From Phaeosaccion multiseriatum (lineage: Eukaryota > Protista > Ochrophyta, other classes), in NCBI GenBank assembly GCA_965112735.1, contig OZ218954.1, forward strand, positions 2,852,001-2,916,000: a DNA stretch of 64,000 nucleotides, written 5' to 3'. The position numbers and the translations under genes are program-made. The notes below the pieces were generated by a model. The model did not search any database and had not been told where the DNA came from. It was given only the letters and a program-made list of their open reading frames with translations. Positions 6,147 to 61,200 of this stretch are shown one piece after another. Within the stretch, counting starts at the first letter, position 1; each line of letters begins with the position of its first letter.

Positions 6147-6269
6147 TCGACATTCGCGTGCTGTCTCCCCCGTTGGACCCTCTTTGCCATTCTTGTGTGT
6201 ACTGCAGGAGTGAGTAAGTGATGCCGCTCGCCGCAATTCAAGACGGTCACCCCTCCCCTCCCATCCCCT

Positions 6270-38062: not shown

Positions 38063-38691
38063 GGTTACCACAGAGAGAGACGGGCCGCCACAGCGAGAGA
38101 GGGACTACCGCAGAGGGGGGGGGGGGGGAAAGAAAGTGAAACTGAAAAGAGCCCCCAGCCGACCACTCCATTGCCACTACTGCCATCTCTACTGCCCTGC
38201 CCTGTATCACCAACTGCCGTGCTCTGCCCTCACTCGCACTTGAGAGCGGCCTACCTCGAGAAAGAGGACTTCAGGAGTGAGTGAATGGATAAATATATAA
38301 TCACCTCATAAACTGAAACTGGAAGTGTGCGCGAGTGTGTGTGTGTGTGCCTGGGGCCAGCGGGGGGGGCCTGTTACTCTCCCTCTGGGTCAGGGAGAGG
38401 GAGGGCAGCACCTGCGCCGCGGTTGAGCCGGCCCAGGAAGGCGCGTTCACGCTCCGAGAGCCACATCTGGTGACTGCAGCTGACTATCCGGCGGAGTCGG
38501 ATCAGGACGTGGCCCTTGGTGGTAGAGGAGCCCGTGCGGCCGGTGCGAGAGACGACGTGTTCCGCGAGAGCGTGTAAGAGGGACTGCGCCTGTAAGCTGA
38601 GTTAAGTGGTCCGTGCGTCTCGATGGCGAAGGTGTGGACCCAATCGGAGGACCAACACGTGAAGCTAAGCTCTCCTCTCAGGGTGTATATA

Positions 38692-39013
38692 CTGTGATTT
38701 CGCGGTTGAGTGGCACTTTTGACGCCCCGTGATTTTTTTTTGACGCCAAATGACGATTACTTTGACGACGTTTGACGACTTTTGAACCCCTTTTTTACCC
38801 ACTTTAAAGCCCTGTTTGACGCACTTTGACGCCCTTTGACGCCCTTTTATCTTACTTCGCCTTAATTTCGTCTAAAACAAAATCACGGAAAGGCGTCAAA
38901 GGGCGTCAAAGTGCGTCCAAGTGGGTTCAAAAGTCGTCAAACGTCGTCAAAGTAATCGTCATTTGGCGTCAAAAAAAAATCACGGGGCGTCAACAGTGCC
39001 ACTCAACCGCGAA
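38692..39013. mobile_element. Palindromic MITE-like element, copy 1 (right terminus eroded)
   Basis: TA|CTGTGATTTCGCGGTTGAGTGGCAC...GTGCCACTCAACCGCGAA; long arms rich in TTTGACG subrepeats. Confidence 0.85.
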
Positions 39014-39059
39014 GAGGAGGAAGAAGGATTCAAAAAAGAAAAGATTGAAAGGACAAGGC

Positions 39060-40791
39060 ATGCAACCCATCACCGTGCAGCAGGCAACATGCCCCGAGGT
39101 ACGACACTGCCCCGGGTTTTCTCCAAGATGAAGGGGCGGAGTATGGTAGTCACCAGTCAACGAGTCTTTAATGAGTGAGGGGGAGAAGGGGGGTGCTCAG
39201 CGATGCTTCCTTCAGCCCAGCCCATCCCAACCCATAATCTTACCCTTACAGCTGTCTCATTACTCTTTCACTCCACCAGGGAAGGCGACTCTATCGGGCC
39301 ATCGTTGGAACGGAAAGCCTCTCCACTGTGAAAGCGCTGGTTAGGAAGCTCGTCGCCAAGCACGGTAAAGCGATGTTGGAGAAGCCTGTCGACGAAGAAG
39401 GCTATACGGCTATGATATGGGCTGCGAGATGCGATCGGCTGGACGTCGTGGACCTTCTGCTGCAGGGCGGGGCCTCCTTCAGCACCGGGGGAGGGCGGTA
39501 CGGATTCACGCCATTGATAGAGGCTAGCCGGCAGGGACATAACGAAGTGGTGAGGCGGCTGTTGGATGTCGGGGCCCGTGTAAACCAGATCGATCTCGGA
39601 GGAGTGACGCCTTTGATTGCGGCTGCCACTAAAGGGCGCTTCACAACTGTGCAGCAGCTCCTTCCGGCGGGGGCCGATGTCAATGCTGCCACTAATGAGG
39701 GGTGTACTTCGATCTGGATGGCATCTCACAATGGGCACACCTCCGTCGTGGGGCGACTCATTGCAGCGGGCGCGGATGTGAACAAAGTAGACGCCATCGG
39801 AAGGACTCCACTCGTCGTGGCTTCCGAATTCGGGCATGGGGGTGTGGTGCAGCGGCTGATCAGGGCCAACGCCAACATCGAGAGGGCTGCTGAGAGCGGC
39901 ATCACTCCACTGTGGTTAGCCTCGGAGGGCGGGCATGCGTCCATCGTGCAGCAGCTCCTCGATGAGCATGCCTACATGGAGGCCAGGAGCAACAAAGGCA
40001 CTACTCCTCTCATGATCGCTGCTCTTAGAGGACGCTTGGCCGTGGTGAAGCTACTTTTGGCTGCAGGGGCGGACGTACTCGCGTCTGACCTCGAGGGCTT
40101 CACGCCTCTGCACATGGCCGCTCAAGAAGGTCACGACACCGTGGTGGAGTGGCTTCTTTCTGCGGGGGCAAAGGTGGAGACAAGGTCCAACGATGGTGTA
40201 ACACCCCTCCACCTTGCTGCTCAAGAAGGTCACGAGGCCGTGGTGGAGCGGCTTCTCTCTGCAAGAGCACGGGCGGAGGCAGCGACCAACATTGGTGCAA
40301 CGCCCCTCCACCTTGCTGCTCAAACAGGTCAGGAGGCCGTGGTGGAGCGGCTTCTTTCTGCGGGGGGAAAGGTAGAGACAGGGATCAACACTGGTTCAAC
40401 GCCCCTCCACCTTGCTGCTCAAGAAGGTCACGAGGCTGTCGTCGCTCGTCTCATCTCTGCAGGATCCCCGATCGATGCCCAGAGGCCGGACGGTGCCACC
40501 CCACTGCTTCTCGCCATCCGCTATGGCCACCATGGCATTGCACGGCAGCTCCTCTCGGCCGATGCCTCGGTGGACAAGGCCTTGGCTTTGGCACGGATGT
40601 ATGGACTGGGCCCTGAGATTGAGCAGCGGCTCAGAGACGCAGCAGCAGCCTTCTTCCGATCTCAAAGCGCACTGGACCTGATGCGAAGGACCGATCCGAC
40701 CTTCGATAGGGAGAGGGGGATGTCGCCGCTGGAGAGGCCCTGGAGTGTCGGGAGCGAGACGTGGGAGGGCATGGCGGAGGAGATGGGCTGA
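39060..40791 (+). CDS. Ankyrin repeat protein, paralog 1 (~516 aa, ~12 repeats)
   Basis: Exon 39060-39098 (MQPITVQQATCPE) splices in phase to 39280-40791; GxTPLHxAAxxG repeats. Confidence 0.9.
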
Positions 40792-41961
40792 AGTCAAGAG
40801 TAGTGGGCCTGGGTGAGATGGGAGGTGGGGGGGAGACAACGACCGAGACTAAAGAGGACTGCTCTCGCTCGCTTGCACCAGTCAGGCCATGGGGAGTATG
40901 GACATACCACGATGCGATGCCAGAGAGGCACCGTCTAGAGCACATTCAGATCGACTTGGCGGGAATGACTTTGGGATCGAAGCAAAAGGAACGGGGTTGG
41001 GTGGGGGGGGGGGGGTGGGATTCACACAGGGGTAGCTAGCAAATAGGTTCAAAACAGTGTGTGTGTGTGTGTGTGTGTGTGCTTGAGTTTGTTAGGCGAA
41101 GGACTTTCTTTGGGTACGACGCACATCGGCAGGTCCGCCGCTCGGGTGGGCGAAAGCATTCCAAAATCGAGATACGATATGCCCATAAGGTTCTTGGGTC
41201 GGGCGCCGCAGGCGGGCACAGCAATTGGTCGGAGATTGGAGGGGGCACAATTCCCCTGATAGCCGGCACAAGCGCATACGCGAAGGTGATGCCAGCAGTG
41301 GGGTGCTGTGCTCGAGTGGAGGCGAAGGCAAGCCACATGCTCATCGAGGCAGCAGCTGTGCAGTCCGGTGGAAGCAATACCCACTCACTCACTCACACTT
41401 TCACTCACTCACATACTCACTCACCCTCACTCACTCACCCACTCACTAGAGTCTTGTGAGCCACCGCTGCTCCCTCCTTTGGTTCCTACCGTATTCACAA
41501 AGGCTTGCCTTCGGCGAGAGCAACACTCCGCTACAACGTAACCATCAGCGCATGTCTATCGTGGGATCGTCCTATCCATCGTCACTTGAAAAAGAGGCAA
41601 ACGAACTCGGTCCCCACCCCCCCCCGAGGCGAGAGGACTTCTATGGGGCTTACGTAAGCCTTCTGTAGACCCTTATGTAGGCCTTTGGTTAGTCCTCATG
41701 TACTCGCTATGTAGGCCTCTGCTGGAATGGTGAGGTCAGGACCTGGATGTATATATATAGTTCCCCTTTTTTTGATTTCTGATTACTGTGATTACTGATT
41801 AACTTCTGTATCTGGCGCCAGCCCGAGGAAATGGCCTGGTTGCTGGGGGGGTTGATTATATTTTGTCCAGCAGGGTCGACTAAGCAAGTGCCAAGCATTG
41901 ACTTATAACAGCAGCTCTTGCGTCCTCAGCTTTCTCGCATCCATCTTTTTGATCTTGTTTA

Positions 41962-42279
41962 CTGTGATTTCGCGGTTTGAGTGGCACTTTTGATCTTTGA
42001 TGCCAAATGACGATTACTTTGACGACGTTTGACGACTTTTGAACCCCTTTTTTACCCACTTTAAAGCCCTATTTGACGCACTTTGACGCCCTTTGACGCT
42101 GGGCGCGCGGTGATTTTAATCACGGAAAAGGGCGTCAAAGGGCGTCAAAGTGCGTCAAACAGGGCTTTAAAAGTGAAAAAGGGGTTCAAAAGTCGTCAAA
42201 CGTCGTCAAAGTAATCGTCATTTGGCGTAAAAAAAAATTCATGGGGCGTCAAAAGTGCCACTCAACCGCGAAATCGGAG
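41962..42279. mobile_element. Palindromic MITE-like element, copy 2
   Basis: TA|CTGTGATTTCGCGGTTTGAG...CTCAACCGCGAAATCGGAG|TA. Confidence 0.85.
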
Positions 42280-42319
42280 TAGCAAGGATTCAAAAAAGAA
42301 AAGATTGAAAGGACAAGGC

Positions 42320-45300
42320 ATGCAACCCATCACCGTGCAGCAGGCAACATGCCCCGAGGTACGACACTGCCCCGGGTTTTCTCCAAGATGAAGGGGCGGA
42401 GTATGGTAGTCACCAGTCAACGAGTCTTTAAAGGAGTGAGGGGGAGAAGGGGGGTGCTCAGCGATGCTTCCTTCAGCCCAGCCCATCCCAACCCATAATC
42501 TTACCCTTACAGCTGTCTCATTACTCTTTCACTCCACCAGGGAAGGCGACTCTATCGGGCCATCGTTGGAACGGAAAGCCTCTCCACTGTTAAAGCGCTG
42601 GTTAGGAAGCTCGTCGCCAAGCACGGTAAAGCGATGTTGGAGAAGCCTGTCGACGAAGAAGGCTATACGGCTATGATATGGGCTGCGAGATGCGATCGGC
42701 TGGACGTCGTGGACCTTCTGCTGCAGGACGGGGCCTCCTTCAGCACCGGGGGAGGGTCGCACGGGATCACGCCATTGATAGAGGCTAGCCGGCGGGGACA
42801 TAACGAAGTGGTGAGGCGGCTGTTGGATGTCGGGGCCCGTGTAAACCAGATCGATCTCGGAGGAGTGACGCCTTTGATTATGGCTGCCGATCAAGGGCAC
42901 TTCATAATTGTGCAGCAGCTCCTTCCGGCGGGGGCCGATGTCAATGCTGCTAATAATGAGGGGTGTACTTCGATCTGGATGGCATCTCAGAATGGGCACA
43001 CCTCCGTCGTGGGGCGACTCATTGCAGCGGGCGCGGATGTGAACAAAGTAGACGACATCGGAAGGACTCCACTCGTCATGGCGTCCCAATTCGGGCATGG
43101 GGGTGTGGTGCAGCGGCTGATCAGGGCCAACGCCAACATCGAGAGGGCTACTGAGAGCGGCCACACTCCACTGTGGTTAGCCTCGGAGGGCGGGCATGCG
43201 TCCATCGTGCAGGAGCTCCTCGATGAGCATGCCAACGTGGAGGCCAAGAGCCACAAAGGCTTTACTCCTCTCATGATCGCTGCTCACGGAGGCCACTTGG
43301 CCGTGGTGAAGTTCCTTTTGGCTGCAGGGGCGGACGTACTCGCGTCTGACCCCGACGGCTTCACTCCTCTGCACATGGCCGCTCAGGAAAGTCACGACGC
43401 CGTGGTTAAGCGGCTTCTTTCTGCGGGGGCAAAGGTGGAGACAGCGGACAACGATGGTGCAACACCCCTCCACCATGCTGCTCAAAAAGGTCACGAGGCC
43501 GTGGTGGAGCGGCTTCTCTCTGCAGGAGCAAAGGTGGAGACAGCGATCAACGTTGGTGCAACGCCCCTCCACCTTGCTGCTCAAAAAGGTCAGGAGGCCG
43601 TGGTGGAGCGGCTTCTCTCTGCAGGAGCAAAGGTGGGGGCAGCGGCCAACGATGGTGTAACACCCCTCCACGTTGCTGCCCAAGAAGGTCAGGAGGCAGT
43701 GGTGGAGCGGCTTCTCTCTGCAGGAGCAGAAGTGGAGACAGAAGCCAAAAATGGTGCAACACCCCTCCACCTTGCTGCTCATGGAGGTCAGGAGGGAGTG
43801 GTGGAGCGGCTTCTTTCTGCGGGGGCAAAGGTGGAGACAGCGATCAACGCTGGTTCAACGCCCCTCCAGCTTGCTGCCCAAGAAGGTCAGGAGGGAGTGG
43901 TGGAGCGGCTTCTCTCTGCAGGAGCAAAGGTGGAGACAGCGGACAACGATGGTATAACACCCCTCCACGTTGCTGTCCAAGAAGGTCAGGAGGCAGTGGT
44001 GGAGCGGCTTCTCTCTGCAGGAGCACGGGCGGAGGCAGCGACCAACATTGGTGTAACGCCCCTCCACCGTGCTGCTCGAGAAGGTCACGAGGCCGTGGTG
44101 GAGCGGCTTCTCTCTGCAGGAGCAAAGTTGGAGACAGCGGACAACGATGGTACAGCGCCCCTCCACCTTGCTGCTTATGGAGGTCACGAGGGCGTGGTGG
44201 AGCGTCTTCTTTCTGCGGGAGCCAGAGTGGAGATAGGGAGAACTGACGGTACAACACCTCTCCGGCTTGCTGCTGAAGAAGGTCACGAGGCCGTGGTGGA
44301 GCGGCTTCTCTCTGCAGGAGCAAAGGTGGAGACAGCGGACAACCATGGTGAAACGCCCCTCCACCTTGCTGCTCATGGAGGTCACGAGGCCGTGGTGGAG
44401 CGGCTTCTCTCCGCAGGAGCAAAGGTGGAGACAGGGACCCCCGATGGTGTAACACCCCTCCACTTTGCTGCTCAAGAAGGTCAGGAGGCCATGGTGGAGC
44501 GGCTTCTCTCTGCAGGAGCAAAGGTGGGGGCAGCGGCCAACGATGGTGTAACACCCCTCCACGCTGCTGCCCAAGAAGGTCAGGAGGCAGTGGTGGAGCG
44601 GCTTCTCTCTGCAGGAGCAGAAGTGGAGACAGAATCCCAAAATGGTGCAACACCCCTCCACCTTGCTGCTCGAGAAGGTCACGAGGCCATGGTGGAGCGG
44701 CTTCTTTCTGCGGGAGCCAGAGTGGAGATAGGGAGAACTGACGGTACAACACCCCTCCACCTTGCTGCTGAAGAAGGTCACAAGGCCGTGGTGGAGCGGC
44801 TTCTCTCTGCAGGAGCAAAGTTGGAGACAGCAGCCAACGGTGGTACAGCGCCCCTCCACCTTGCTGCTCATGGAGGTCACGAGGCCGTGGTGGAGCGGCT
44901 TCTCTCTGCAGGAGCAAAGGTGGGGGCAGCGGCCAACGATGGTACAACACCCCTCCACTTTGCTGCTTGGAAAGGTCACAAGGCCGTGGTGGAGCGGCTT
45001 CTCTCTGCAGGAGCAAAGGTGGAGACAGCGGACATCCATGGTACAACACCCCTCCACGTTGCTGCTGAAGAAGATCACAAGGCCGTGGTGGAGCGGCTTC
45101 TTTCTGCGGGAGCCAGAGTGGAGATAGGGAGAACTGACGGTACAACACCCCTCCACCTTGCTGCTGAAGAAGGTCACAAGGCCGTGGTGGAGCGGCTTCT
45201 CTCTGCAGGAGCAAAGGTGGGGGCAGCGGCCAACGATGGTACAACACCCCTCCACTTTGCTGCTTGGAAAGGTCACAAGGCCGTGGTGGAGCGGCTTCTC

Positions 45301-46227
45301 TCTGCAGGAGCAAAGGTGGGGGCAGCAACCAAAAATGGCTACACACCCCTCCACGATGCTGCTCGAGAAGGTCACGAGGCCGTGGTGGAGCGGCTTCTCT
45401 CTGCAGGAGTAAAGTTGGAGACAGCAACCAAAAATGGTGCAACACCCCTCCACCTTGCTGCTCAAGAAGGTCACGAGGCCGTGGTGGAGCGGCTTCTCTC
45501 TGCAGGAGCACGGGCGGAGGCAGCGACCAACATTGGTACAACGCCCCTCCACCGTGCTGCTCGAGAAGGTCACGAGGCCGTGGTGGAGCGGCTTCTCTCT
45601 GCAGGAGCAAAGTTGGAGACAGCGGACAACGATGGTACAGCGCCCCTCCACCTTGCTGCTCAAAAAGGTCAGGAGGGAGTGGTGGAGCGTCTTCTCTCTG
45701 CGGGAGCCAGAGTGGAGATAGGGAGAACTGACGGTACACCCCTCCACCTTGCTGCTCATGGAGGTCACGAGGCCGTGGTGGAGCGGCTTCTCTCTGCAGG
45801 AGCAGAAGTGGAGACAGCAACCAAAAATGGTGCAACGCCCCTCCACCTTGCTGCTCATCAAGGTCACGAGGCCGTCGTCGCTCGTCTCATCTCTGCAGGA
45901 TCCCCGATCGATGCCCAGAGGCTGGACGGCGCCACCCCACTGCTTCTCGCCATCTACAAGGGCCACCATGGCATTGCACGACAGCTCCTCTCGGCCGATG
46001 CCTCGGTGGACAAGCCCTTGGCTGCGGCACGGCGGAATAGACTGGGCCCTGAGACTGAGCAGCGGCTCAGAGGCGCAGCAGCAGCCTTCTTCCGATCGCA
46101 GAGTACACTGGACCTTATGCGAAGGACCGATCCGACCTTCGATAGGGAGAGGGGGATGTCGCCGCTGGAGAGGCCCTGGAGTGTCGGGAGCGACACGTGG
46201 GAGGGCATGGCGGAGGAGATGGGCTGA
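42320..46227 (+). CDS. Ankyrin repeat protein, paralog 2 (~1241 aa, ~34 repeats)
   Basis: Exons 42320-42358 and 42541-46227; 725 aa longer than paralog 1 (22x33 minus 1). Confidence 0.92.
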
Positions 46228-47385
46228 AGTCAAGAGTAGTGGGCCTGGGTGAGATGGGAGGTGGGGGGGAGACAACGACCGAGACTAAAGAGGACTGCTC
46301 TCGCTCGCTTGCACCAGTCAGGCCATGGGGAGTATGGGCATACCACGATGCGATGCCAGAGAGGCACCGTCTATGGCACATTCAGATCGACTTGGCGGGA
46401 ATGACTTTGGGAGCGAAGCAAAAGGAATGGGGTTGGGTGGGGGGGGGGGGGTGGGATTCACACAGGTGTAGTAAACAGATTCACACTGGGGTAGCTAGCA
46501 AATAGGTTCAGAACAGTGCTCGAGTCTGTTAGGCGAAGGATTTTGTTCGGGTAAGATGCACATCGGCAGTTCCGCTCGCTCGGGTGGGCGGAGGCATGCC
46601 ACAAAATCGAGATACGATATGCCCATAAGGTTCTTGGGTCGGGCGCCGCAGGCGGGCACAGCAATTGGTTGGAGATTGGAGGGGGCACAATTCCCCTGAT
46701 CTCCGGCACAAGCGCATACGCGAAAGTGATGCCAGCAGTGGGGTGCTGTGCTCGGGTGGAGGCGAAGGCAAGCCACATGCTCATCGAGGCAGCTGCTGTG
46801 CAGTCCAGTCAAAGCAATACCCACCCACTTACTCACTCACTCACTCACTTACTTACACCCGTCATCGAGCAGAGTCTTGTGAGCCACCGCTGCTCCCTCC
46901 ATTGGTTCCTACCGTCTTCACAAAGGCTTGCCTTCGGCGAGAGCAACACTCCGCTACAACGTAACCATCAGCGCATGTCTATCGTGGGATCGTCCTATCC
47001 ATCGTCACTTGAAAAAGAGGCAAACGAACTCGGTCCCCACCCCCCCCCGAGGCGAGAGGACTTCTATGGGGCTTACGTAAGCCTTCTGTAGACCCTTACG
47101 TAGGCCTTTGGTTAGTCCTCATGTACTCCCTATGTAGGCCTCTGCTGGAATGGTGAGGTCAGGACCTGGATGTATACATATAGTTCCCCTTTTTTTTGAT
47201 TTCTGATTACTGTGATTACTGATTAACTTCTGTATCTGGCGCCAGCCCGAGGAAATGGCCTGGTTGCTGGGGGGGTTGATTATATTTTGTCCAGCAGGGT
47301 CGACTAAGCAAGTGCCAAGCATTGACTTATAACAGCAGCTCTTGCGTCCTCAGCTTTTTCGCATCCATCTTTTTGATCTTGCTTA

Positions 47386-47687
47386 CTGTGATTTCGCGGT
47401 TTGAGTGGCACTTTTGACGCCCTTTGACGCCCTTTTACGCCCTTTTACGCCCTTTTACGCCCTCTTCCGTGATTTTTTTTTACGTTATTTTTTTTAGACG
47501 AAATTAAGGCGAATTAAGATAAAAGGGCGTCAAAGGGCGTAAAAGGGCGTCAAAGGGCGTCAAATAGGGGGCTAAAGCGTCGTCAAACGTCGTCAAACGT
47601 CGTCAAAAAAGTCGTCATTTGGCGTAAAAAAAAATTAATGGGGCGTAAATTGGGCGTAAAAAGTGCCACTCAACCGCGAAATCACAG
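47386..47687. mobile_element. Palindromic MITE-like element, copy 3 (core inverted relative to copy 1)
   Basis: Same termini. Core TTAGACGAAATTAAGGCGAATTAAGATAAAAGGG is the reverse complement of the copy 1 core. Confidence 0.85.
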
Positions 47688-47727
47688 AAGCAAGGCTTCA
47701 AAAAAAAAAAGATTGAAAGGACAAGGC

Positions 47728-50700
47728 ATGCAACCCATCACCGTGCAGCAGGCAACATGCCCCGAGGTACGACACTGCCCCGGGTTTTCTCCAAGATGAA
47801 GGGGCGGAGTATGGTAGTCACCAGTCAACGAGTCTTTAATGAGTGAGGGGGAGAAGGGGGGTGCTCAGCGATGCTTCCTTCAGCCCAGCCCATCCCAACC
47901 CATAATCTTACCCTTACAGCTGTCTCATTACTCTTTCACTCCACCAGGGAAGGCGACTCTATCGGGCCATCGTTGGAACGGAAAGCCTCTCCACTGTTAA
48001 AGCGCTGGTTAGGAAGCTCGTCGCCAAGCACGGTAAAGCGATGTTGGAGAAGCCTGTCGACGAAGAAGGCTATACGGCTATGATATGGGCTGCGACATAC
48101 GATCGACTGGATGTCGTGGACCTTCTGCTGCAGGAGGGGGCCTCCTTCAGCACCGGGGGAGGGTCGCACGGGATCACGCCATTGATAGAGGCTAGCCGGC
48201 GGGGACATAACGAAGTGGTGAGGCGGCTGTTGGATGTCGGGGCCCGTGTAAACCAGATCGATCTCGAAGGAGTGACGCCTTTGATTATGGCTGCCGATCA
48301 AGGGCACTTCATAATTGTGCAGCAGCTCCTTCCGGCGGGGGCCGATGTCAATGCTGCTAATAATGAGGGGTGTACTTCGATCTGGATGGCATCTCAGAAT
48401 GGGCACACCTCCGTCGTGGGGCGACTCATTGCAGCGGGCGCGGATGTGAACAAAGTAGACGACATCGGAAGGACTCCACTCGTCATGGCGTCCCAATTCG
48501 GGCATGGGGGTGTGGTGCAGCGGCTGATCAGGGCCAACGCCAACATCGAGAGGGCTGCTGAGAGCGGCCACACTCCGCTGTGGGCAGCCTCGGAGTACGG
48601 GCATGCGTCCATCGTGCAGCAGCTCCTCGATGAGCATGCCAACGTGGAGGCCAGGAGCAACAAGGGCACTACTCCTCTCATAATCGCTGGTCACAGAGGA
48701 CGCTTGGCCGTGGTGAAGCTACTGTTTGCTGCAGGGGCGGACGTACTCGCGTCCAACCTCGAGGGCTTCACGCCTCTGCACATGGCCGCTCAACAAGGTC
48801 ACGACACCGTGGTGGAGTGGCTTCTTTCTGCGGGGGCAAAGGTGGAGACAAGGTCCAACCACGGTTCAACACCCCTCCACATGGCCGCTCAAGAAGGTCA
48901 CGAGGCCGTAGTGGAGCGGCTTCTTTCTGCGGGAGCCAGAGTGGAGATAGGGAGAACTGACGGTACAACACCCCTCCACGTTGCTGCCCAAGAAGGTCAG
49001 GAGGCAGTGGTGGAGCGGCTTCTCTCTGCAGGAGCAGAAGTGGAGACAGAAGCCAAAAATGGTGCAACACCCCTCCACCTTGCTGCTCAAAAAGGTCAGG
49101 AGGCCGTGGTGGAGCGGCTTCTCTCTGCAGGAGCAAAGGTGGGGGCAGCGGCCAACGATGGTGTAACACCCCTCCACGTTGCTGCCCAAGAAGGTCAGGA
49201 GGCAGTGGTGGAGCGGCTTCTCTCTGCAGGAGCAGAAGTGGAGACAGAAGCCAAAATTGGTGCAACACCCCTCCACCTTGCTGCTCATGGAGGTCAGGAG
49301 GGAGTGGTGGAGCGGCTTCTCTCTGCAGGAGCAAAGGTGGGGGCAGCGACCAACGATGGTGTAACACCCCTCCACTTTGCTGCTGGAGAAGGTCACGAGG
49401 CCGTGGTGGAGCGGCTTCTCTCTGCAGGAGCACGGGCGGAGGCAGCGACCAACATTGGTGCAACGCCCCTCCACCGTGCTGCTCGAGAAGGTCACGAGGC
49501 CGTGGTGGAGCGGCTTCTCTCTGCAGGAGCAAAGTTGGAGACAGCGGACAACGATGGTACAGCGCCCCTCCACTTTGCTGCTCGGAAAGGTCACAAGGCC
49601 GTGGTGGAGCGGCTTCTTTCTGCGGGAGCCAGAGTGGAGATAGGGAGAACTGATGGTACAACACCTCTCCGGCTTGCTGCTGAAGAAGGTCACGAGGCCG
49701 TGGTGGAGCGGCTTCTCTCTGCAGGAGCAAAGGTGGAGACAGCGGACAACCATGGTGAAACGCCCCTCCACCTTGCTGCTCATGGAGGTCACGAGGCCGT
49801 GGTGGAGCGGCTTCTCTCCGCAGGAGCAAAGGTGGAGACAGGGACCCCCGATGGTGTAACACCCCTCCACTTTGCTGCTCAAGAAGGTCAGGAGGCCATG
49901 GTGGAGCGGCTTCTCTCTGCAGGAGCAAAGGTGGGGGCAGCGGCCAACGATGGTGTAACACCCCTCCACGTTGCTGCCCAAGAAGGTCAGGAGGCAGTGG
50001 TGGAGCGGCTTCTCTCTGCAGGAGCAGAAGTGGAGACAGAATCCCAAAATGGTGCAACACCCCTCCACCTTGCTGCTCGAGAAGGTCACGAGGCCATGGT
50101 GGAGCGGCTTCTCTCTGCAGGAGCAAAGGTGGGGGCAGCGACCAACGATGGTACAACACCCCTCCACGTTGCTGCTGAAGAAGGTCACAAGGCCGTGGTG
50201 GAGCGTCTTCTTTCTGCGGGAGCAAAGTTGGAGACAGCGGACAACGATGGTGCAACACCCCTCCACCTTGCTGCTCTACAAGGTCACGAGGGCGTGGTGG
50301 AGCGGCTTCTCTCTGCAGGAGCAAAGGTGAGGGCAGCGGCCAACGATGGTACAACACCCCTCCACTTTGCTGCTTGGAAAGGTCACAGGGCCGTGGTGGA
50401 GCGGCTTCTCTCTGCAGGAGCAAAGTTGGAGACAGCGGACAACCATGGTGTAACACCCCTCCACTTTGCTGCTCGAGAAGGTCACGAGGCCGTGGTGGAG
50501 CGGCTTCTCTCTGCAGGAGCAAAGGTGGGGGCAGCGGCGAACGATGGTGTAACACCCCTCCACGTTGCTGTTGAAGGAGGTCACGAGGCCGTGGTGGAGC
50601 GGCTTCTCTCTATGGGAGCACGGGCGGAGGCAGCGACCAACGATGGTGTAACGCCCCTCCACCGTGCTGCTCAAAAAGGTCAGGAGGCCATGGTGGAGCG

Positions 50701-51934
50701 GCTTCTTTCTGCAGGAGCAAAGGTGGAGACAGCGATCAACACTGGTTCAACGCCCCTCCACATGGCCGCTCAAGAAGGTCAGGAGGCCGTGGTGGAGCGG
50801 CTTCTCTCTGCAGGAGCAAAGGTGGAGACAGCGACCAAACAGGGTGAAACACCCCTCCACTTTGCTGCTAGAAAAGGTCACGAGGCCGTGGTGGAGCGGC
50901 TTCTCTCTGCAGGAGCAAAGTTGGAGACAGCGGACAACCATGGTGCAACACCCCTCCACCTTCCTGCCCAAGAAGGTCACGAGGGCGTGGTGGAGCGTCT
51001 TCTCTCTGCGGGAGCAAAGGTGGGGGCAGCGGACAACGATGATGCAACACCCCTCCACCTTGCTGCTTATGGAGGTCACGAGGCCGTGGTGGAGCGGCTT
51101 CTCTCTGCAGGAGCAGAAGTGGAGACAGAAGCCAAAAATGGTGCAACACCCCTCCACGTTGCTGTTGTAGGAGGTCACGAGGCCGTGGTGGAGCGGCTTC
51201 TCTCTGCAGGAGCAAAGGTGGGGGCAGCGGACAACGATGGTGTAACACCCCTCCACCGTGCTGCTCAAAAAGGTCAGGAGGCCGTGGTGGAGCGGCTTCT
51301 CTCTGCAGGAGCAAAGTTGGAGACAGCGATCAACACTGGTTCAACGCCCCTCCACCTTGCTGCCCAAGAAGGTCAGGAGGGAGTGGTGGAGCGTCTTCTC
51401 TCTGCGGGAGCCAGAGTGGAGATAGGGAGAACTGACGGTACAACACCCCTCCACCTTGCTGCTCATGGAGGTCACGAGGCCGTGGTGGAGCGGCTTCTCT
51501 CTGCAGGAGCAGAAGTGGAGACAGCAACCAAAAATGGTGCAACGCCCCTCCACGTTGCTGTTCATCAAGGTCACGAGGCTGTCGTCGCTCGTCTCATCTC
51601 TGCAGGATCCCCGATCGATGCCCAGAGGCTGGACGGCGCCACCCCACTGCTTCTCGCCATCTACTATGGCCACCATGGCATTGCACGGCAGCTCCTCTCG
51701 GCCGATGCCTCGGTGGACAAGCCCTTGGCTGCGGCACGGCGGAATAGACTGGGCCCTGAGATAGAGCAGCGGCTCAGAGGCGCAGCAGCAGCCTTCTTCC
51801 GATCGCAGAGTACACTAGACCTTATGCGAAGGACCGATCCGACCTTCGATAGGGAGAGGGGGATGTCGCCGCTGGAGAGGCCCTGGAGTGTCGGGAGCGA
51901 GACGTGGGAGGGCATGGCGGAGGAGATGGGCTGA
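47728..51934 (+). CDS. Ankyrin repeat protein, paralog 3 (~1341 aa, ~37 repeats)
   Basis: Exons 47728-47766 and 47948-51934; 825 aa (25x33) longer than paralog 1. Confidence 0.92.
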
Positions 51935-53159
51935 AGTCAAGAGTAGTGGGCCTGGGTGAGATGGGAGGTGGGGGGGAGACAACGACCGAGACTAAAGAGG
52001 ACTGCTCTCGCTCGCTTGCACCAGTCAGGCCATGGGGAGTATGGACATACCACGATGCGATGTCAGAGAGGCACCGTCTATGGCACCTTCAGAGAGACTT
52101 GGCGGGAATGACTTTGGGATCGAAGCAAAAGGAACGGGGTTGGGGGGGGGGGGATTCACACAGGTGTAGTAAACAGATTCACACAGGGGTAGCTAGCAAA
52201 TAGGTTCAAAACAGTGTGTGTGTGTGTGTGTGCTTGAGTTTGTTAGGCGAAGGACTTTCTTTGGGTACGACGCACATCGGCAGGTCCGCCGCTCGGGTGG
52301 GCGAAGGCATTCCAAAATCGAGATACGATATGCCCATAAGGTTCTTGGGTCGGGCGCCGCAGGCGGGCACAGCAATTGGTCGGAGATTGGAGGGGGACAG
52401 CGCCCCAGATAAACCACATAGTAACACACAGCGTAAGTGGTCGTAGATTGGAGGGGGCACAACTCCCCTGATCTCCGGCACAAGCGCATAGGCGAAGGTG
52501 ATGCCAGCAGTGGGGTGCTGTGCTCGGGTGGAGGCGAAGGCAAGCCACATGCTCATTGAGGCAGCAGCTGTGCAGTCCAGTCGAAGCAATACCCACTCAC
52601 TCACTCACACTTTCACTCACTCACATACTCACTCACCCTCACTCACTCACCCACTCACTTACTTACACCCGTCATCGAGCAGAGTCTTGTGAGCCACCGC
52701 TGCTCCCTCCATTGGTTCCTACCGTATTCACAAAGGCTTGCCTTCGGCGAGAGCAACACTCCGCTACAACGTAACCATCAGCGCATGTCTATCGTGGGAT
52801 CGTCCTATCCATCGTCACTTGAAAAAGAGGCAAACGAACTCGGTCCCCACCCCCCCCCGAGGCGAGAGGACTTCTATGGGGCTTACGTAAGCCTTCTGTA
52901 GACCCTTATGTAGGCCTTTGGTTAGTCCTCATGTACTCCCTATGTAGGCCTCTGCTGGAATGGTTAGGTCAGGACCTGGAGGGTGTCAAAGTTTTTTTAA
53001 CTTCTGTATCTGGCGCCAGCCCGAGGAAATGGCCTGGTTGCTGGGGGGGTTGATTATATTTTGTCCAGCAGGGTCGACTAAGCAAGTGCCAAGCATTGAC
53101 TTATAACAGCAGCTCTTGCGTCCTCAGCTTTCCCACTTCCCTCTTTTTGATCTTGCTTA

Positions 53160-53488
53160 CTGTGATTTCGCGGTTTGAGTGGCACTTTTGACGCCCCGAA
53201 TTTTTTTTTTGACGCCAAATGACGATCGATTACTTTGACGACTTTTGAACCCCTTTTTTACCCACTTTAAAGCCCTATTTGACGCACTTTGACGCCCTTT
53301 GACGCTGGGCGCGCGGTGATTTTAATCACGGAAAAGGACGTCAAAGGGCGTCAAAGTGCGTCAAATAGGGCTTTAAAGTGGGTAAAAAAGGGGTTCAAAA
53401 AGTCGTGAAACGTCGTCAAAGTAATCGTCATTTGGCGTCAAAAAAATTCACGGGGCGTCAAAAGTGCCACTCAACCGCGAAATCACAG
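53160..53488. mobile_element. Palindromic MITE-like element, copy 4 (most complete, TA on both sides)
   Basis: TA|CTGTGATTTCGCGGTTTGAGTGGCAC...GTGCCACTCAACCGCGAAATCACAG|TA. TA flanks are consistent with a Tc1/mariner-type non-autonomous element. Confidence 0.88.
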
Positions 53489-53694
53489 TAAGGGGATAAA
53501 AAAAAGAGATATAAACGGAACTTTATAAACTGAAACTGGAAGTGTGCGCGAGTGTGTGTGTGTGTGTGTGTGTGTGAGTGAGGGAGTGAGTGCGTGAGTG
53601 AATGTGCACACGCGCGCACCACACACTCACTCTCCTCATATCACTCACTTCCTCAATCTCTTCCACACGCTCCTTGCTCAACTCGTGTACACAT

Positions 53695-54645: not shown

Positions 54646-57600
54646 TCACGGCCCCGCTTCCGCTTCCAACAGCTGACTCCGACATGTAGGGCACGAGGCG
54701 TTGATGCCCAACCACCGGTCCAAACACACCGCATGAAAGCGATGCAAGCACGTAGGTACCTGCCGCACCATCTGTGAGTCCTCATACCTAGACAGGCAGA
54801 TGGCGCACTCGTCTGCGCACGACACCCCGCACCCCTCCTCTCCCACCGTTTCCGTGGGCAGAGCGGCAATCACCTCCGGCGATGCTCCCTTCTGCACCTC
54901 CTCCTCCTCCTCCTCTTCCTCCTCCGCCTCCTCCCACTCCTCCTCCTCCTCCTCCTCATCCTCCCCCCAGCCCTCCCTCAATCCTCTTCCTCTCCTTCTC
55001 CTTCGCCGCCCCGTGTTCCGAAGAGCCATGAGGGCCAGCTCCCCGGCCTCTCCCCCCACCCCCGCCACTCTCAAAAGACTCTGTAACGTCTGCAGCAGCT
55101 CCAAACTGATGCGGTTAAGACTCGAACGCACGTCCTCGGGCAGCCCTAGCCGGGCGAGTCTCTCGCCCTCCCCTTCTCCTCCTTCTCCTCCTTCCCCTTC
55201 CCCCTCTTCTTCCCCCTCCACCTCACCGTCTCCTCCTCCTCCTCCTCCGGCCTGGATTTGGTCAACTCCCGAGGAGTACTCGTCGATAATATCCATCAGC
55301 GCTGTCATCTGTTGATGCCTGACCCAGTACTGATCCAAGCGGAGCACCAGCAGAGTGCGAAGGGAGTCGTTCTGTTGCTCCTGCAGGCCCGCGATCTCGG
55401 CCAAGAGGCGCTGTCGTTCCGAATCGATGCTTCCGATGGCACCCTCCAGAGCCGCTGGGGAGGAGGAGGAGGAGGAGGAGGAGGAGGAGGAGGAGGAGGA
55501 GGAGGAGGAGGAGGAGGAGGATTGTGATGGCAAGGAGGAGTCCGTCGCTGTCGGGTCGGACGGCTGGTCCTGGTGCGAAGACCACGGGGCCATCATCATC
55601 GTCGTCCGGGGCTGCGGTGCGGTTACGACGGTTGAGTTGGCCAAGGCGCGCAGCTGCCGAGCGAGATGCGCCGAAGAGGGAGGAGGGGAGGCGGATGAAG
55701 GAGGCGAAGAAGGAGAAGAAGGAACCACAAGGGATTCGAAGCCACTGCTGCTCTCGAGCCAGGGTGATGCTGTGAAAGCCTCCGTCACTGTTGCTGCTGA
55801 TGTATCACCAATTGCTACCTCAGGTGCGGGTGGCGTCGTGGCGGCGGCGCTGGACGCTCCTATGGTCACCCTTTGTCTTCTCCGAACAGGAGGCACACCC
55901 TCTGTTCTGCTTCCTCCTCCTGCTCCTGCTCCTCCTCCTGCTCCTCCTGCTCCTCCTCCTCCTCCTCCTCCTGCTCCTCCTCCTCCTCCTCCTCCTCCTC
56001 CTCCTCCTCCTCCTCCTCCTCCTCCTCCTCCTCCTCCTCCAGCAGATGCTGCCCCCCCTGCTGTTTCTACTCCCATGGCTGTTTCCACCGTCAATCCTCC
56101 TGCGCCTTGCCTCCCCACTGCCGATCGATAGGCCGCCTCTGCCTGTTCCGCAATAGAAGGCTCGGGGGAAGGGTTCCTCCTCCTTCTGGACACGACAACA
56201 GAGGAGGAGGAGGAGGAGGAGGAGGAGGAGGAGGCACCTGTCGGCAACGAAGGCCCTCCTCGCACTGAGTCCTCAGCGCCCCTTCTCATACCCCTCCCAC
56301 TGTCGTCACTGTCACCGCTCCCGCTCAGGCCTCTACTTGCTCGTCGGTATGGCCTCTCGCTTCTATCCTCCTGCTCCTGCTCCTGCTTCGTCTCCTCCTG
56401 CTCCTGGTCGTTACCCCTCTCCTCCTCCTCCTGCTGCTGCTCCTCCTCCTCCGCCTCCTCCTCCTCCTCCTCCTCCTCCTCCTCCTCCTGCGCCTCCTCC
56501 TCCTCCTCCTCCTCCTCCTGCTCCTGCTGGTCTCCCTGCTGGTCCTCCTCCTGCTCCTGCTGCTGCCGCCGCTGCCGCCGCTGCTGCTGCAGCTGCTCCT
56601 GTCCCACTGACTGCTGGTCCTCTCCGCAGCTTCCGAGCAGATCATCAAGGCTGTCACAGCCACTCAAGAGGCGTTTGTTCGCGTCGCTACTCGGCGGTTG
56701 GATGCCAAAGCTCGCCACGCGGCGGACAGGAACAGGCGTGAAGCTCCTGCTAACTGCTGTACTACCAACTCCTCCAGCCGACAACCTCCTCGATCCGCCC
56801 CCCCCCCCTTCGTGCTCTCCTCTCCCTTCCCTCTCTTCTTCAGCTTTCTGCAAAGCCCTACCTGCGACGAGCGCTGCCAATCTCTGGCGAGACGCCGCTG
56901 GCCCTACCCCCCCTCCTACTCCTGCCGGGGCGGAAACAGAGCTGCGCTCCCACGTCACCGTCGTCGCCGCTTGTAGCACGCCACCCGCTCCCCCCAAGCG
57001 CCCTATTCTTTGACCAGTGCTCTCCTCTACCCACTCCACCTCGCCCCCTCTTTCTCCCATTGCTGCTGGTGCTGGTGCTGGTGCTGGTGCTGGTGCTGCT
57101 GGTGCTGCTGCGGTATACGCATGTGCGCGGTGCCTCTCTCCGCCGCCCTCCTCGCTTCCGCTGCCGCTGTCACACTCGACAGAAAAGGCCCGACTGCCCA
57201 CATGATAATCCGTGGAATCGGCGGAGGAGGGTGGCGCTGTGATGATGGTCGTTGGATACGGGAGATTGAGCGCCTCAGGAGCGTCGTCGTCGTTGTTGCT
57301 TTTGTTGATGTTGCTGTTGATCATGCCGTTGTTGTCGTCTACGCTCTGGAGTTCGCGTAGGGACTTTGCCAGTAGCGAGTGTGAATGGGATGCCTGACGG
57401 ATGCGCAGGCCGGGGGAGGCCTTCCAGCTCGAGCGGGTGCGGGGAGACCAGCAGGAGGCGGCGCTCCTCACCTCTGCTGCTGCTGCTGGTGGCTGGTCCT
57501 CCCCGAGGAAACCATCCAAACTGTCGTACTGGGTGTGTTGTATGGACTGCTTTGCTGCTGCTTCTCCCGCTCTTGTCGCCGACTCTGTGGCTGCTCCTCC

Positions 57601-58137
57601 TGCATGCTGATGACGTGTTGCATTGAAGCGCCCTGCACCTGCCCCCCAACGGGCGGAGGTGGAGGAAGAGAAAGAAGACGAAGAAGAGGAAGGGCGGGAG
57701 AAGAAAGGTGCGGACGAAGAGCCCCCCCCGTCCTCTCTCCCCCTTTCTTCGGCGGAAAATCTCAATCCACTCCTACTCCTCCTGCTACTACCACTGCTGA
57801 CGCTGACGCTGCTGCTTCTGCTATCACTCCGTCGTGGTAGTACTATGGGGCTGGAGATTTGACTCGCAGCCAAGCTCAGCGCCTTTGTCTCCACGAGCCC
57901 TGTCGCCGCAGTGATCACTCTGATGCCCTCGTATACACCGGAAGGGTGCTTCCTTTCGCCGGGGCCCTCAGCTTCCTCGGTCTCCTGCCCTTCTCCGAGA
58001 CGCCTGGGCATGTTGTCACTCAGCCTCTCGATGAGAAGCTCAGCAGCGCCCCCTGTGTCCCACGCTGATGAGTATTTGACTCCGCGTGCGTCTCGCGTGA
58101 ATAGGGAAGCTGGATGTGGAGTACGTGAAGGTGCCAT
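54646..58137 (-). CDS. RING-H2 E3 ubiquitin ligase, single exon (~1163 aa), long disordered N-terminus
   Basis: C-terminal KGASPEVIAALP..CAICLSRYEDSQMVRQVPTCLHRFHAVCLDRWLGINASCPTCR. ATG 58137 is preferred because ATG 58230 would overlap the divergent gene's start. Confidence 0.85.
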   Translation of the reverse strand: MAPSRTPHPASLFTRDARGVKYSSAWDTGGAAELLIERLSDNMPRRLGEGQETEEAEGPGERKHPSGVYEGIRVITAATGLVETKALSLAASQISSPIVLPRRSDSRSSSVSVSSGSSRRSRSGLRFSAEERGREDGGGSSSAPFFSRPSSSSSSFSSSTSARWGAGAGRFNATRHQHAGGAATESATRAGEAAAKQSIQHTQYDSLDGFLGEDQPPAAAAEVRSAASCWSPRTRSSWKASPGLRIRQASHSHSLLAKSLRELQSVDDNNGMINSNINKSNNDDDAPEALNLPYPTTIITAPPSSADSTDYHVGSRAFSVECDSGSGSEEGGGERHRAHAYTAAAPAAPAPAPAPAPAAMGERGGEVEWVEESTGQRIGRLGGAGGVLQAATTVTWERSSVSAPAGVGGGVGPAASRQRLAALVAGRALQKAEEEREGRGEHEGGGGGSRRLSAGGVGSTAVSRSFTPVPVRRVASFGIQPPSSDANKRLLSGCDSLDDLLGSCGEDQQSVGQEQLQQQRRQRRQQQEQEEDQQGDQQEQEEEEEEEEAQEEEEEEEEEEEAEEEEQQQEEEERGNDQEQEETKQEQEQEDRSERPYRRASRGLSGSGDSDDSGRGMRRGAEDSVRGGPSLPTGASSSSSSSSSSSVVVSRRRRNPSPEPSIAEQAEAAYRSAVGRQGAGGLTVETAMGVETAGGAASAGGGGGGGGGGGGGGGGGGGGGGAGGGGGGGAGGAGGGAGAGGGSRTEGVPPVRRRQRVTIGASSAAATTPPAPEVAIGDTSAATVTEAFTASPWLESSSGFESLVVPSSPSSPPSSASPPPSSAHLARQLRALANSTVVTAPQPRTTMMMAPWSSHQDQPSDPTATDSSLPSQSSSSSSSSSSSSSSSSSSSSSPAALEGAIGSIDSERQRLLAEIAGLQEQQNDSLRTLLVLRLDQYWVRHQQMTALMDIIDEYSSGVDQIQAGGGGGGDGEVEGEEEGEGEGGEGGEGEGERLARLGLPEDVRSSLNRISLELLQTLQSLLRVAGVGGEAGELALMALRNTGRRRRRRGRGLREGWGEDEEEEEEEWEEAEEEEEEEEEVQKGASPEVIAALPTETVGEEGCGVSCADECAICLSRYEDSQMVRQVPTCLHRFHAVCLDRWLGINASCPTCRSQLLEAEAGP

Positions 58138-58228
58138 TTGTTGCGTGCGATGGGACAGCACTGGCGCGCAGCAAAAAAAAGCTGTCAAGGGAGTCCTCCC
58201 CGCCCTCTTCCGACGTGAGGATGTGGAC

Positions 58229-61200
58229 ATGAGTGGCGGGGTAGGAAAGAAGGGGAAGAAGCGCAGGAGATCCACTCCCGTTGCTCCAAGCACTGCCTTT
58301 GGATGTGGTCCTTGCCGGAGCAGTGGAAGCCTGTGCGACGGGGGGCGCCCATGCTTCTCATGCCTCGCTATGGGGCTGCAGGTGTGTGCTTGTCGCCACC
58401 TCTTTGTCTTTAATCCGGGACTACTTGAGCGATGGTAGTAGTGGTGGTGTGGGGAGGGACGGAGGTCCTCTGTGGACGAGGCATGGATGGATGCATCGAC
58501 TCATCGCCCCCTGCCCCCGCTGCTGTCGTCCTTCTTCTCTCTTCCCTCAGTGCGTGTACGGGGAAGAAGGGGGCTCGTCAGCGTCCGCAGCGGGCGGGGG
58601 GGCGGGCTCATCCACAGCTGCTGCCCCTGCTTCTCCAGCAGTGGGAGGGGGGGTGGTGCCAGCTACGCCCAGCACCACTCAGCAGGCGAACGGAAAAGGC
58701 AGCAAGGACAGCAGTAGCGATGGGGGTTCTCTTGTCACACCGCAGGTGGCGGACAGACAACGTTCAGGTACGTCTTCTGCTGCAGGGGCGTTGAGCAAAC
58801 TGAGGAAGGAGGGACAGACTCAGGCGCAGCAGAAGCGCCAGAAGAGGGAGCAGCACCGGCAGCGGCAGGAGGCCCAGGCGACCGCTGCTCGTCGCAAAGG
58901 CGCGGAGGAGCTGCAGCAAGGGTGGATGGAACGCTTCGATCCGCTCTTCAGCCTGGAGGAGGACTGGACAGTGCTGGCCACGGGGCCTCCTCGCTGCATC
59001 TTTCGGTGAGTGAAGTGAGTGGGTGGGTGAGTGAGTGAGTGAGTGAGTGAGTGAGTGAGTGAGTGAGTGAGTGAGTGAGTGAGTGAGTGAGTGAGTGAGT
59101 GAGTGAGTGAGTGAGTGAGTGAGTGAGTGAGTGAGTGAGTGAGTGAGTGAGTGAGTGAGTGAGTGAGTGAGTGAGTGAGTGAGTGAGTGAGTGAGTGAGT
59201 GAGTGAGGGCACACGATTATATTTGATTCATGTTTGTACTCACTCGCCTTTTTAGACTCCATTGAGTGAGAGTCAGGGACAGCGGTAGAAGTAGGGTCAC
59301 AGAGAGAGAGAGAGAGAGAAACAGAGATGCGGGTAGGTTAGATCACAGTCGGAGGAGAGAAAGGAAGCCAAGCACCTTCCTCAGACGAGAAGGGAAGCCA
59401 AGCGCCTTCCTCAGTCGCCTGGGACGATCGACAGCAGACGAGAGAGGGGAGGATGTGCCCCTTGAGACAGAGGCTGACCAAAGCCTTCCTCCCTTCCTCC
59501 CTTGCTTCATTCATTACGCTTTGCTCACTCACTGTGTGTGTGTGTGTGCGTGTGTGTATGTGTGTGTGTGTGCGTGTTTGACAGAAACTCCGCTGCCTAT
59601 CCGCAATTGCGCACCCCGCTACGGAGATGGGAAGAATCCGATCAGGTGTGTCTCCCTCGCCGGACCCACGGCCGCACCATCATTTTCCATCATCTACACC
59701 CACACCCGTTCCCCTCTCCCTCTCCTCGCTCTCTCCCTCTCCTCGCCCCCGTTTCCCCTCTCCCTCTCCCGCTCCCCTATCCTCCCCTCCCTGCTTCTAC
59801 CCTCCCTCTCTTCCTCTCTCCCTTTCTTCCTCCCTCTCACCTCCCTCCCTCCCTCCCTCCCTCTTCTCCCCTCCCTCTCCCCCTCTCTCCCTCCCACCCT
59901 CCCACCCTCCCGCCTCTCCTCCCCTCCCTCCCTCCCTCCCTCCCTCCCTCCCTCCCTCCCTCCCTCCCTCCCTCCCTCCCTCCCTCCCTCCCTCCCTCCC
60001 TCCCTCCCTCCCTCCCTCCCTCCCTCCCTCCCTCCCTCCCTCCCTCCCTCCCTCCCTCCCTCCCTCCCTCCCTCCCTCCCTCCCTCCCTCCCTCCCTCCC
60101 TCCCTCCCTCCCTCCCTCCCTCCCTCCCTCCCTCCCTCCCTCCCTCTCTCCTTCCCCCCCCCCCCCCCACCCACCCACAGACAACTGTGAACGAAGGTGT
60201 GCCCTCATTCTGTCGCTGGGGGGCAGAGACAGGGAGCTTCCTGCTTTCCGAGGGCACTCTGCAGGCCGTGGCCATGGAAGACAGGTGAGCGTGTTGGTTC
60301 TTTTTTTGCAGCTGTTGGCGCCCCAGGTATGACCATCTCGTCCACCTGTCCACTTCTGAAAGCAAAGAAATTACTTCGTAGTACCGACGAGGTTTGTGCA
60401 CGATGGATGATTCAGCTTTCCAATTGTCATGTCAATTGCCCCCCTCTCCCTCCCCTCCCCCCCCCCCCCGTCCGTTTCTGTCGGTCTTCGAATCTCACGG
60501 TCTCTCGGCCCCGCGTTCACAACTGGCTATTTCTTGTCGATTTACAACACGCAAAATGTAAAACGTTTCTCGCTCCAACGCACACTCACATACATATACA
60601 TACACACACGAACACACACGCACACACACACGCACGCACGCACACACACACATACACGAACACACATACACACACACGCACACACACACGCACACACACT
60701 CACGCACACACACACGCACACACACACGCGCACACACACACACCCACAGCGCTGCTCGTACGGCGAGTCTGAGAGCCTTGTCCGACGGCAGTGCGCAGGG
60801 CCGCTGCCTGGAGGCTGTCCTGCTGCCCCACTCCAGGCGGACGCTCTACGCTCACGTGGGCGGCGCACTCGCTGACGAGGTGAGGCTCCACGCTTGGGCA
60901 ACATGTACATATATACATATAATATAATATATGTATTATATATATTGTATTTTAATGTACATAAATTTCCTTGATATACTTAGTACTACTACTCTCTCTC
61001 TCTCTTTCTCTCTCTCGCTCTCTCCCTCTGTAGGGCTATGTCTCTGTCGATCTGTCTGCCTGTCTCTCTCTATCGCTGCCTCCATCTCTTATCGCTCTTT
61101 CTCTCTTGCTGTACTGTCGAGAGACCGAGCGAGTGAATACAGCTCTCCCGCCCTACCCCTTACCGACCCACCTCAAGCCATCCCCCCTGCTCAGCCCCCC

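Follow-up and report, generated by a model that had tools for sequence, protein, structure and literature searches.

Three ankyrin-repeat genes occupy a triplicated segment

We analyzed a 64,000-nucleotide stretch of the genome of the ochrophyte Phaeosaccion multiseriatum (GenBank assembly GCA_965112735.1, contig OZ218954.1, positions 2,852,001 to 2,916,000), hereafter the window, whose own coordinates are used below unless another contig is named. A head-to-tail triplicated segment at 38690-53507 holds one plus-strand gene per copy, and the three genes, termed A, B, and C, encode proteins that are built of ankyrin repeats only and have no signal peptide. Counted from a methionine that opens the sequence MLEK, the three intact open reading frames (ORFs) lie at 39373-40791 (A, 472 amino acids and 12 ankyrin repeats), 42634-46227 (B, 1197 amino acids and 34 repeats), and 48041-51934 (C, 1297 amino acids and 37 repeats). 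From the evidence set out below, we consider it probable that these genes belong to a duplicated ankyrin family in which central repeat units were amplified, in which the binding groove has been both shuffled and selected, and whose products would act as recognition binders.

The genes may not be strictly single-exon. Sequence conservation points to a putative 39-nt first exon on the plus strand upstream of each (39060-39098 in A, 42320-42358 in B, and 47728-47766 in C), which starts with ATG, ends with GAG followed by GTACGA, is identical in the three genes, and is also preserved in the paralogs L005 and L006. Its phase matches that of a CAG acceptor lying 181-182 nt further on (39279/39280 in A), so that an intron of that length may be followed by main exons at 39280-40791 in A (12 repeats), 42541-46227 in B (34 repeats), and 47948-51934 in C (37 repeats), each carrying all of the repeats and a conserved tail and each with an alternative start at the ATG of the MLEK methionine (39373, 42634, and 48041, respectively). 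Paralogs typically begin with MQRLY; the methionine of this N-terminus is lost in A, B, C, L005, L006, and L008, and a replacement methionine 32 codons downstream is present in A, B, C, and L008 and absent in L005 and L006. Real or not, the first exon contributes no domain. Its ATG in gene A is the position, 39060, at which an earlier note made from this sequence alone had placed the start of the locus. An alternative first exon from ATGAAGGGG further downstream was rejected, as it is in one phase in A and C but in another in B, L006 does not preserve its donor, and L005 has a deletion there.

The genes differ by whole 99-bp units with a constant scaffold

To count the repeats, we cut the proteins in a 33-residue register. 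Seven N-terminal repeats that follow the cap are common to A, B, and C, as are the two final repeats and an extension of 66 residues; the difference in length is a central block of 2, 24, or 27 units of 99 bp. These are units 7-8 of A, which are of the amplifiable unit type (40195-40392), units 7-30 of B (43456-45828), and units 7-33 of C (48863-51535), all on the plus strand. Whole units have been gained and lost, and the only deviation is an in-frame 3-bp (one-codon) deletion in unit 30 of B. The ORFs and the register bear out what the earlier note had proposed, namely, that the paralogs share their N-terminal repeats and C-cap and differ by whole repeats (12, 34, and 37) with their frames intact.

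The approximately seven N-terminal repeats are older and individually distinct, unlike the consensus-like central unit. At the DNA level, 50 of the 53 central units are unique, and at the protein level 49 are; two units differ on average at 15.6 of 99 bases, and mean identity is 72% between units and 80% to the consensus. The variation is concentrated at codons 2, 7, 10, 11, 13, and 26-33, with protein identity of 39% at these 13 variable residues and 93% at the 20 framework residues. In ankyrin solenoids, the beta-turn and the first helix line the concave binding groove. The positions randomized in designed ankyrin repeat proteins (DARPins), numbered 2, 3, 5, 13, 14, and 33 in the design, are those that we take to be unit codons 32, 33, 2, 10, 11, and 30, respectively. 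In this assumed register, the variable set holds all six of them on a constant consensus framework, which agrees with the earlier placement of the variable segments on the binding face. The scaffold had also been described as near-invariant even at synonymous sites. This is overstated: the framework's silent diversity (pS) is 0.137, about equal to the 8-11% divergence of the intergenic flanks of the three copies, and seven common two-allele silent sites occur there. On the minus strand, open frames also run across the arrays (43855-46275, 806 codons, and 48768-50555, 595 codons), most likely as a by-product of the repeated codon pattern and not as genes.

Turn and helix-1 cassettes are shuffled between units

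Copy-paste shuffling of modules between units is real. All of the turn and helix-1 motifs that had been picked out at first reading (for example, the turns KVETADND and RVEIGRTD and the helix-1 segments LAAHG and VAAQE) are present, and RVEIGRTD precedes each of the four helix-1 types named for it. Turn cassettes are nucleotide-identical at each occurrence, and the RVEIGRTD cassette is identical over 33 nt in six of its seven copies, down to its private silent markers (codons 23 and 25), though it is joined to four different helix-1 segments. As DNA-identical turns with private silent markers stand beside varied helix-1 segments, we attribute the pattern to copying rather than convergence. At the seven silent two-allele framework sites, all four allele combinations were found within 99 bp for 18 of the 21 pairs of sites.

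The comparison of arrays B and C shows exchange of short tracts. In the collinear block formed by units 13-18 of both genes, units 13 and 15-18 are identical or one base apart, but unit 14 carries 10 base differences, which the protein sequences place in helix 1; a lone divergent unit in an otherwise near-identical block is what a short conversion tract leaves behind. Identity among the three genes is likewise a mosaic along their length. Over part of the repeat 0-3 region, B matches C without a difference (100% identity); across the repeat 5-6 region, both 100-bp windows give 86% identity for B and C, versus 93% and 97% for A and C. The earlier statement that turn and helix 1 recombine freely is overstated: the segments are shuffled, but neighboring segments are significantly associated (permutation p 0.0002-0.002), and two-unit blocks recur in the arrays.

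Replacement changes are in excess on the predicted binding face

Selection on groove and framework was compared by pairwise Nei-Gojobori counts over the unique units, with bootstrap intervals. The ratio of replacement to silent differences (pN/pS) is 1.64 (bootstrap 1.39-2.05) over the 13 variable codons and 1.35 (1.08-1.89) over the six DARPin positions, which were chosen before looking, versus 0.25 (0.19-0.35) in the framework, where purifying selection holds the scaffold. By segment, the ratio is 4.8 on the helix-1 face and 1.18 in the turn. Minor codon variants are silent or replacement at 3:58 in the variable codons and at 13:17 in the framework. Beyond what chance would give, the pattern of nucleotide diversity over codon positions is inverted between the two classes, with values of 0.345, 0.35, and 0.22 at the first, second, and third positions of variable codons and of 0.035, 0.033, and 0.128 at those of framework codons. 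At codons 2, 7, 11, and 27-29, the third positions are almost invariant and the first and second are hypervariable. Replacement diversity at the variable codons is 0.33, roughly threefold the divergence of the flanks from copy to copy.

The N-terminal repeats, which have not been amplified, provided an independent data set. Counting changes on a tree of 18 paralogs, we obtained a dN/dS of 1.45 for the DARPin set (p 0.0085) and of 0.40 for the framework, with positions 2, 7, 11, 26, and 31 standing out. The variation is not uniform over codons, with ratios above 1 at the variable and DARPin codons and well below it in the framework, and the data support diversifying selection acting on the predicted binding face.

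A purely neutral form of concerted evolution, in which unit amplification and conversion homogenize the scaffold and exposed positions drift with no role in adaptation or recognition, is an alternative that we regard as unlikely. Surface positions are the least constrained in all ankyrin repeats, the turn stands just at 1.18, the units are non-independent, and the cassettes are few and reused. Relaxed constraint predicts a pN/pS near 1, however, far from the value on the helix-1 face, and it does not fit invariant third positions beside hypervariable first and second ones. Nor does it fit a DARPin set chosen a priori that exceeds 1 in two independent data sets, or replacement diversity well beyond the divergence of the flanks.

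The proteins are predicted ankyrin solenoids without other Pfam domains

Membership of A, B, and C in the ankyrin-repeat class is supported by Pfam matches, a solenoid model, and matches to ankyrin and DARPin folds. In Pfam, Ank_2 was matched with an E value of 3e-109 in A and 0 in B, where 33 Ank stretches were found, and the same search of A and B returned no NTPase, NACHT, NB-ARC, membrane, spectrin-binding, channel, or other non-ankyrin domain. An AlphaFold2 model of gene A, built with an alignment of paralogs, was a confident solenoid with a mean predicted local distance difference test score (pLDDT) of 89.5. After the last repeat it shows two capping helices, and its final ~30 residues have a pLDDT below 50. 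The model of gene B, made without an alignment, adds little; its central array is regular (pLDDT 60-92) and its N-terminus is unreliable. Among solved structures, the best matches were DARPins, with 35-44% identity and template modeling (TM) scores of ~0.8, and the membrane-binding domains of ankyrin-1 and ankyrin-B (TM up to 0.84, 34-37% identity); NOMPC and TRPA1 were matched as well.

These latter matches, together with arrays of 34-37 repeats in B and C that exceed most binding modules, are what a long structural or mechanical scaffold would show, that is, an adaptor or spring-like protein for which length matters most and whose groove variation reflects a few housekeeping partners. We find that explanation hard to credit. 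A family of ~100 paralogs that range from 10 to 38 repeats and undergo birth and death is unlike housekeeping genes, the groove codons are under positive and not purifying selection, and none of the membrane, spectrin-binding, or channel domains expected of such a scaffold is attached.

A conserved tail defines a large family

Each protein ends in a conserved tail of 80 residues (40549-40788 in A, 45985-46224 in B, and 51692-51931 in C, all plus strand), which in B comprises capping helices and then a predicted-disordered end. Across 21 paralogs, the tail alignment (A2) has a mean column identity of 91%, and the tail is under purifying selection. A tail profile search of the genome recovered ~100 strong copies, clustered and spread over at least eight contigs. 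Most lie in open frames of 370-770 residues, and ~16 of the ~100, found in short frames, are probably truncated; paralogs have been born and lost. Judged by sequence, A, B, and C are tandem duplicates in a family of ~100 genes that is specific to P. multiseriatum. The 21 sequenced members have lengths of 406+33n residues, corresponding to 10 to 38 repeats, barring small in-frame indels. Only B, C, and L021 (G000 contig 9, 642300-647500) exceed 1000 residues. L021 has 1330 residues, and nearly all of its repeats after the cap are one consensus-like unit; with 36 copies of the same unit type and a much less diverse turn, it is an independent amplification of the central unit type.

The tail appears to be confined to this family. 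An exhaustive profile search of 1.84 billion representative proteins gave no credible relative, its sole match (P0121) being a low-complexity repeat protein that we treated as spurious. A word-indexed search with gene A found, as outside relatives, only generic ankyrin proteins at no more than 45% identity. A tail end that is conserved and yet predicted to be disordered is a pattern typical of a short docking motif, and the tail may be a constant output part. The initial description of these genes as having neither an NTPase nor an effector is accordingly kept for the first, as Pfam finds ankyrin only, and loosened for the second.

A tail of this kind could dock on a ligase core, which would make the proteins substrate-recognition subunits of a ubiquitin ligase or, alternatively, genes of giant-virus origin resembling poxvirus ANK/PRANC proteins. 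Ankyrin repeats followed by a short constant C-terminal helical part do parallel ANK-PRANC proteins. Against this, F-box, PRANC, BTB, and SOCS models searched against the tails of the 21 paralogs at E values up to 10 gave no match, Pfam and the protein atlas revealed no F-box-like C-terminus that would place the proteins among ANK-PRANC/F-box adaptors, and the tail has no credible relative among the proteins searched. In addition, a scan of the window's six largest remaining ORFs revealed no viral gene, and the G+C content of the window is uniform. We judge both forms of this idea improbable. When the tail and the third-exon piece of the genome's Skp1 were modeled as a complex, the score was 0.00, a value that weighs neither way on binding. 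The single Skp1 match of the genome (L022, G000 contig 1, 5772885-5776028) apparently has three exons and two short introns, versus at most one intron in the ankyrin family.

Sequencing data and integrity of the arrays

Public runs matching the locus came as Logan unitigs of ~100 bases from two samples in two studies. Apparent joints within unitigs were considered as splicing or rearrangement and rejected, their sides being under 31 letters long or the joints also occurring in a DNA run. That the genes are pseudogenes or misassembled (collapsed or expanded) repeats is highly improbable: the run search turned up no RNA and ~16 of the ~100 tail copies lie in short frames, but both long frames (1197 and 1297 codons) are intact and show no more than a single in-frame loss of a codon, the framework pN/pS is 0.25, locus words turn up in runs that come from two samples and two studies, and long reads can assemble units that differ on average at 15.6 of 99 bases without much difficulty.

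The duplicated segment and its surroundings

The window lies on contig 5 of an assembly of 67 Mb in 22 contigs and is eukaryotic in character, with many microsatellites and a G+C content of 51-63% in 2-kb windows. Spacers of ~1.8 kb with 89-92% identity separate the gene copies; they contain no long ORFs and hold a dispersed palindromic element. This element consists of tandem TTTGACGC decamers in both orientations, and the decamer pattern gave 29 matches, versus 0.9 expected, in four clusters. Four elements bound the three genes: one 5' of gene A (38690-39013), with decamers and similarity to the B spacer; one 5' of gene B (41960-42299), recognized by the decamer pattern and spacer similarity; one 5' of gene C (approximately 47400-47570), recognized by the decamer pattern; and a fourth copy of spacer and element (52998-53507), recognized by both features, which closes the segmental duplication. 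Past the fourth element, homology ends in a microsatellite, and no fourth gene is found there. We considered the clusters as a promoter of the ankyrin family and rejected this, because the element is scattered over at least 40 places on many contigs. Such genome-wide dispersal suggests a repeat resembling a miniature inverted-repeat transposable element (MITE) and not a family-specific promoter. This MITE-like element may have mediated the tandem duplication of the A/B/C segment.

Directly 5' of the ATG, ~370 bp are near-identical across A, B, and C (39010-39372, 42270-42633, and 47680-48040). Compared with the 89-92% identity of the other spacer parts, this suggests that gene conversion acted here recently or that a promoter, first exon, and intron are strongly constrained. 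A scan for bacterial promoters and terminators was set aside as irrelevant to a eukaryotic host. Directly downstream of the array, on the minus strand, a 1215-codon ORF (54646-58293) carries a RING-H2 zinc finger at its end (zf-RING_2, E value 1.6e-12); it is adjacent to the ankyrin genes, and we draw no link between them. Elsewhere in the window, a non-ankyrin tandem repeat at 6256-6716 (4.6 copies, 90% matches) has a 99-bp period as well, which is probably a coincidence.

A candidate repertoire of variable binders

Under the reading that we favor, a central unit was amplified to 24 copies in B and 27 in C, and the DNA bears the traces of three processes: whole 99-bp units or two-unit blocks were gained and lost via misaligned recombination, turn and helix-1 cassettes were copied between units and between paralogs by short-tract gene conversion, and selection favored point substitutions at ~8-13 codons per unit on the beta-turn and first helix. 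The resulting proteins would serve as variable intracellular binders of many, probably fast-changing, partners, with the invariant tail joining them to one shared downstream partner, and the long arrays may additionally serve as cassette stores.

Several observations weigh against this. The excess of the pooled pN/pS over 1 is modest, with the turn alone at 1.18, and the ratios come from pairwise counts over units that recombine and are not independent of one another. Neither Pfam (E values up to 10) nor the protein atlas has a match to the tail, whose constraint is only moderate (pN/pS 0.30-0.54). Array length and order in B and C derive from one assembly, and although unitigs on 41800-47799 fill all bins, they are too short to span the arrays. 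There was no RNA run among the public sequencing runs matching words of the locus, so function is argued here from the genes themselves, and a role as a recognition system is our inference.

A more specific proposal, which we consider doubtful though it deserves some weight, is that the tail-bearing family constitutes a germline repertoire of intracellular receptors without a NOD-type NTPase. The groove would capture viral or parasite proteins, the tail would signal to one shared partner, and the arrays of B and C would be multi-specific receptors as well as cassette stores for the shorter paralogs. A bolder version, in which arrays rearrange within a clone, finds no support.

Repeat proteins with a constant scaffold whose binding face is reshuffled and under positive selection usually signal immune-type recognition. 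Among ankyrin repeats, such a regime has to our knowledge so far been documented in fungal NOD-like receptors (NLRs). Here, the same evolutionary regime appears in a protist, in ankyrin-only proteins that carry a tail without relatives elsewhere, and the locus makes intragenic amplification and the exchange of cassettes at the DNA level unusually readable. If the proteins are expressed and bind foreign proteins, they would represent a receptor architecture without an NTPase switch. They would also offer an experimental handle on poorly understood algal defence and a source of natural, pre-stabilized binder scaffolds with 24-27 variable modules.

Comparison with known systems

The membrane-binding domains of ankyrin-R, -B, and -G, with 24 repeats, resemble the algal proteins in that they form a long superhelical solenoid and bind extended peptides in its inner groove. 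They are, however, encoded by single conserved housekeeping genes with diverged repeats, no amplification of units, and a conserved groove, unlike the genes described here. DARPins share the consensus-like scaffold, and the variable set covers their six randomized positions in the register that we assume. The natural set is wider, adding position 7 of helix 1 and loop codons 26-31, and it draws on limited, reused cassettes where DARPins have random codons. The arrays of B and C hold 24-27 variable units, as opposed to two to three in DARPins.

Another comparison is with the candidate LRR-ROCO and NB-ARC-TPR receptors of Ectocarpus, in which each repeat is its own exon and exons are shuffled (Zambounis et al. 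2012, PMC3341825). Both systems are stramenopile, and both combine repeat shuffling, diversifying selection on the repeats, and high rates of gene birth and death (PMC3341825). The repeat type differs, the algal genes studied here have no GTPase or NB-ARC domain, and exon shuffling is replaced by in-frame exchange of 99-bp units within one uninterrupted frame, which spans 1197 codons in B and 1297 in C. The likeness to brown-algal ROCO/NB-ARC genes drawn in the earlier note thus breaks down on mechanism, with one repeat per exon there and one open frame here.

The nearest parallel is with the ankyrin repeats of fungal NLRs, such as the PNP_UDP/NACHT/ANK proteins of Podospora anserina (PMC4986451; Chevanne et al. 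2010, PMC2873952). The fungal proteins have a NACHT or NB-ARC domain and an N-terminal effector domain, and A and B have neither; the algal proteins instead carry a family-specific conserved tail. The fungal class of highly conserved repeats is defined by an identity of 85% or more over a length of 100 residues or more (Dyrka et al. 2014, PMC4986451), versus a mean of 72% between units here (80% to the consensus and 93% in the framework). With no NOD domain and a unit identity below 85%, the algal genes fall outside that class. Repeat number is polymorphic between isolates in fungal NLRs and between paralogs here (10 to 38). Set against Dyrka et al. 2014 (PMC4986451), the resemblance to hypervariable fungal repeats nevertheless holds: both have near-identical 33-residue units, variable repeat numbers, and reshuffling within and between paralogs, and the positive selection known from the concave face of the fungal repeats was found here too (pN/pS 1.35-1.64; tree-based dN/dS 1.45).

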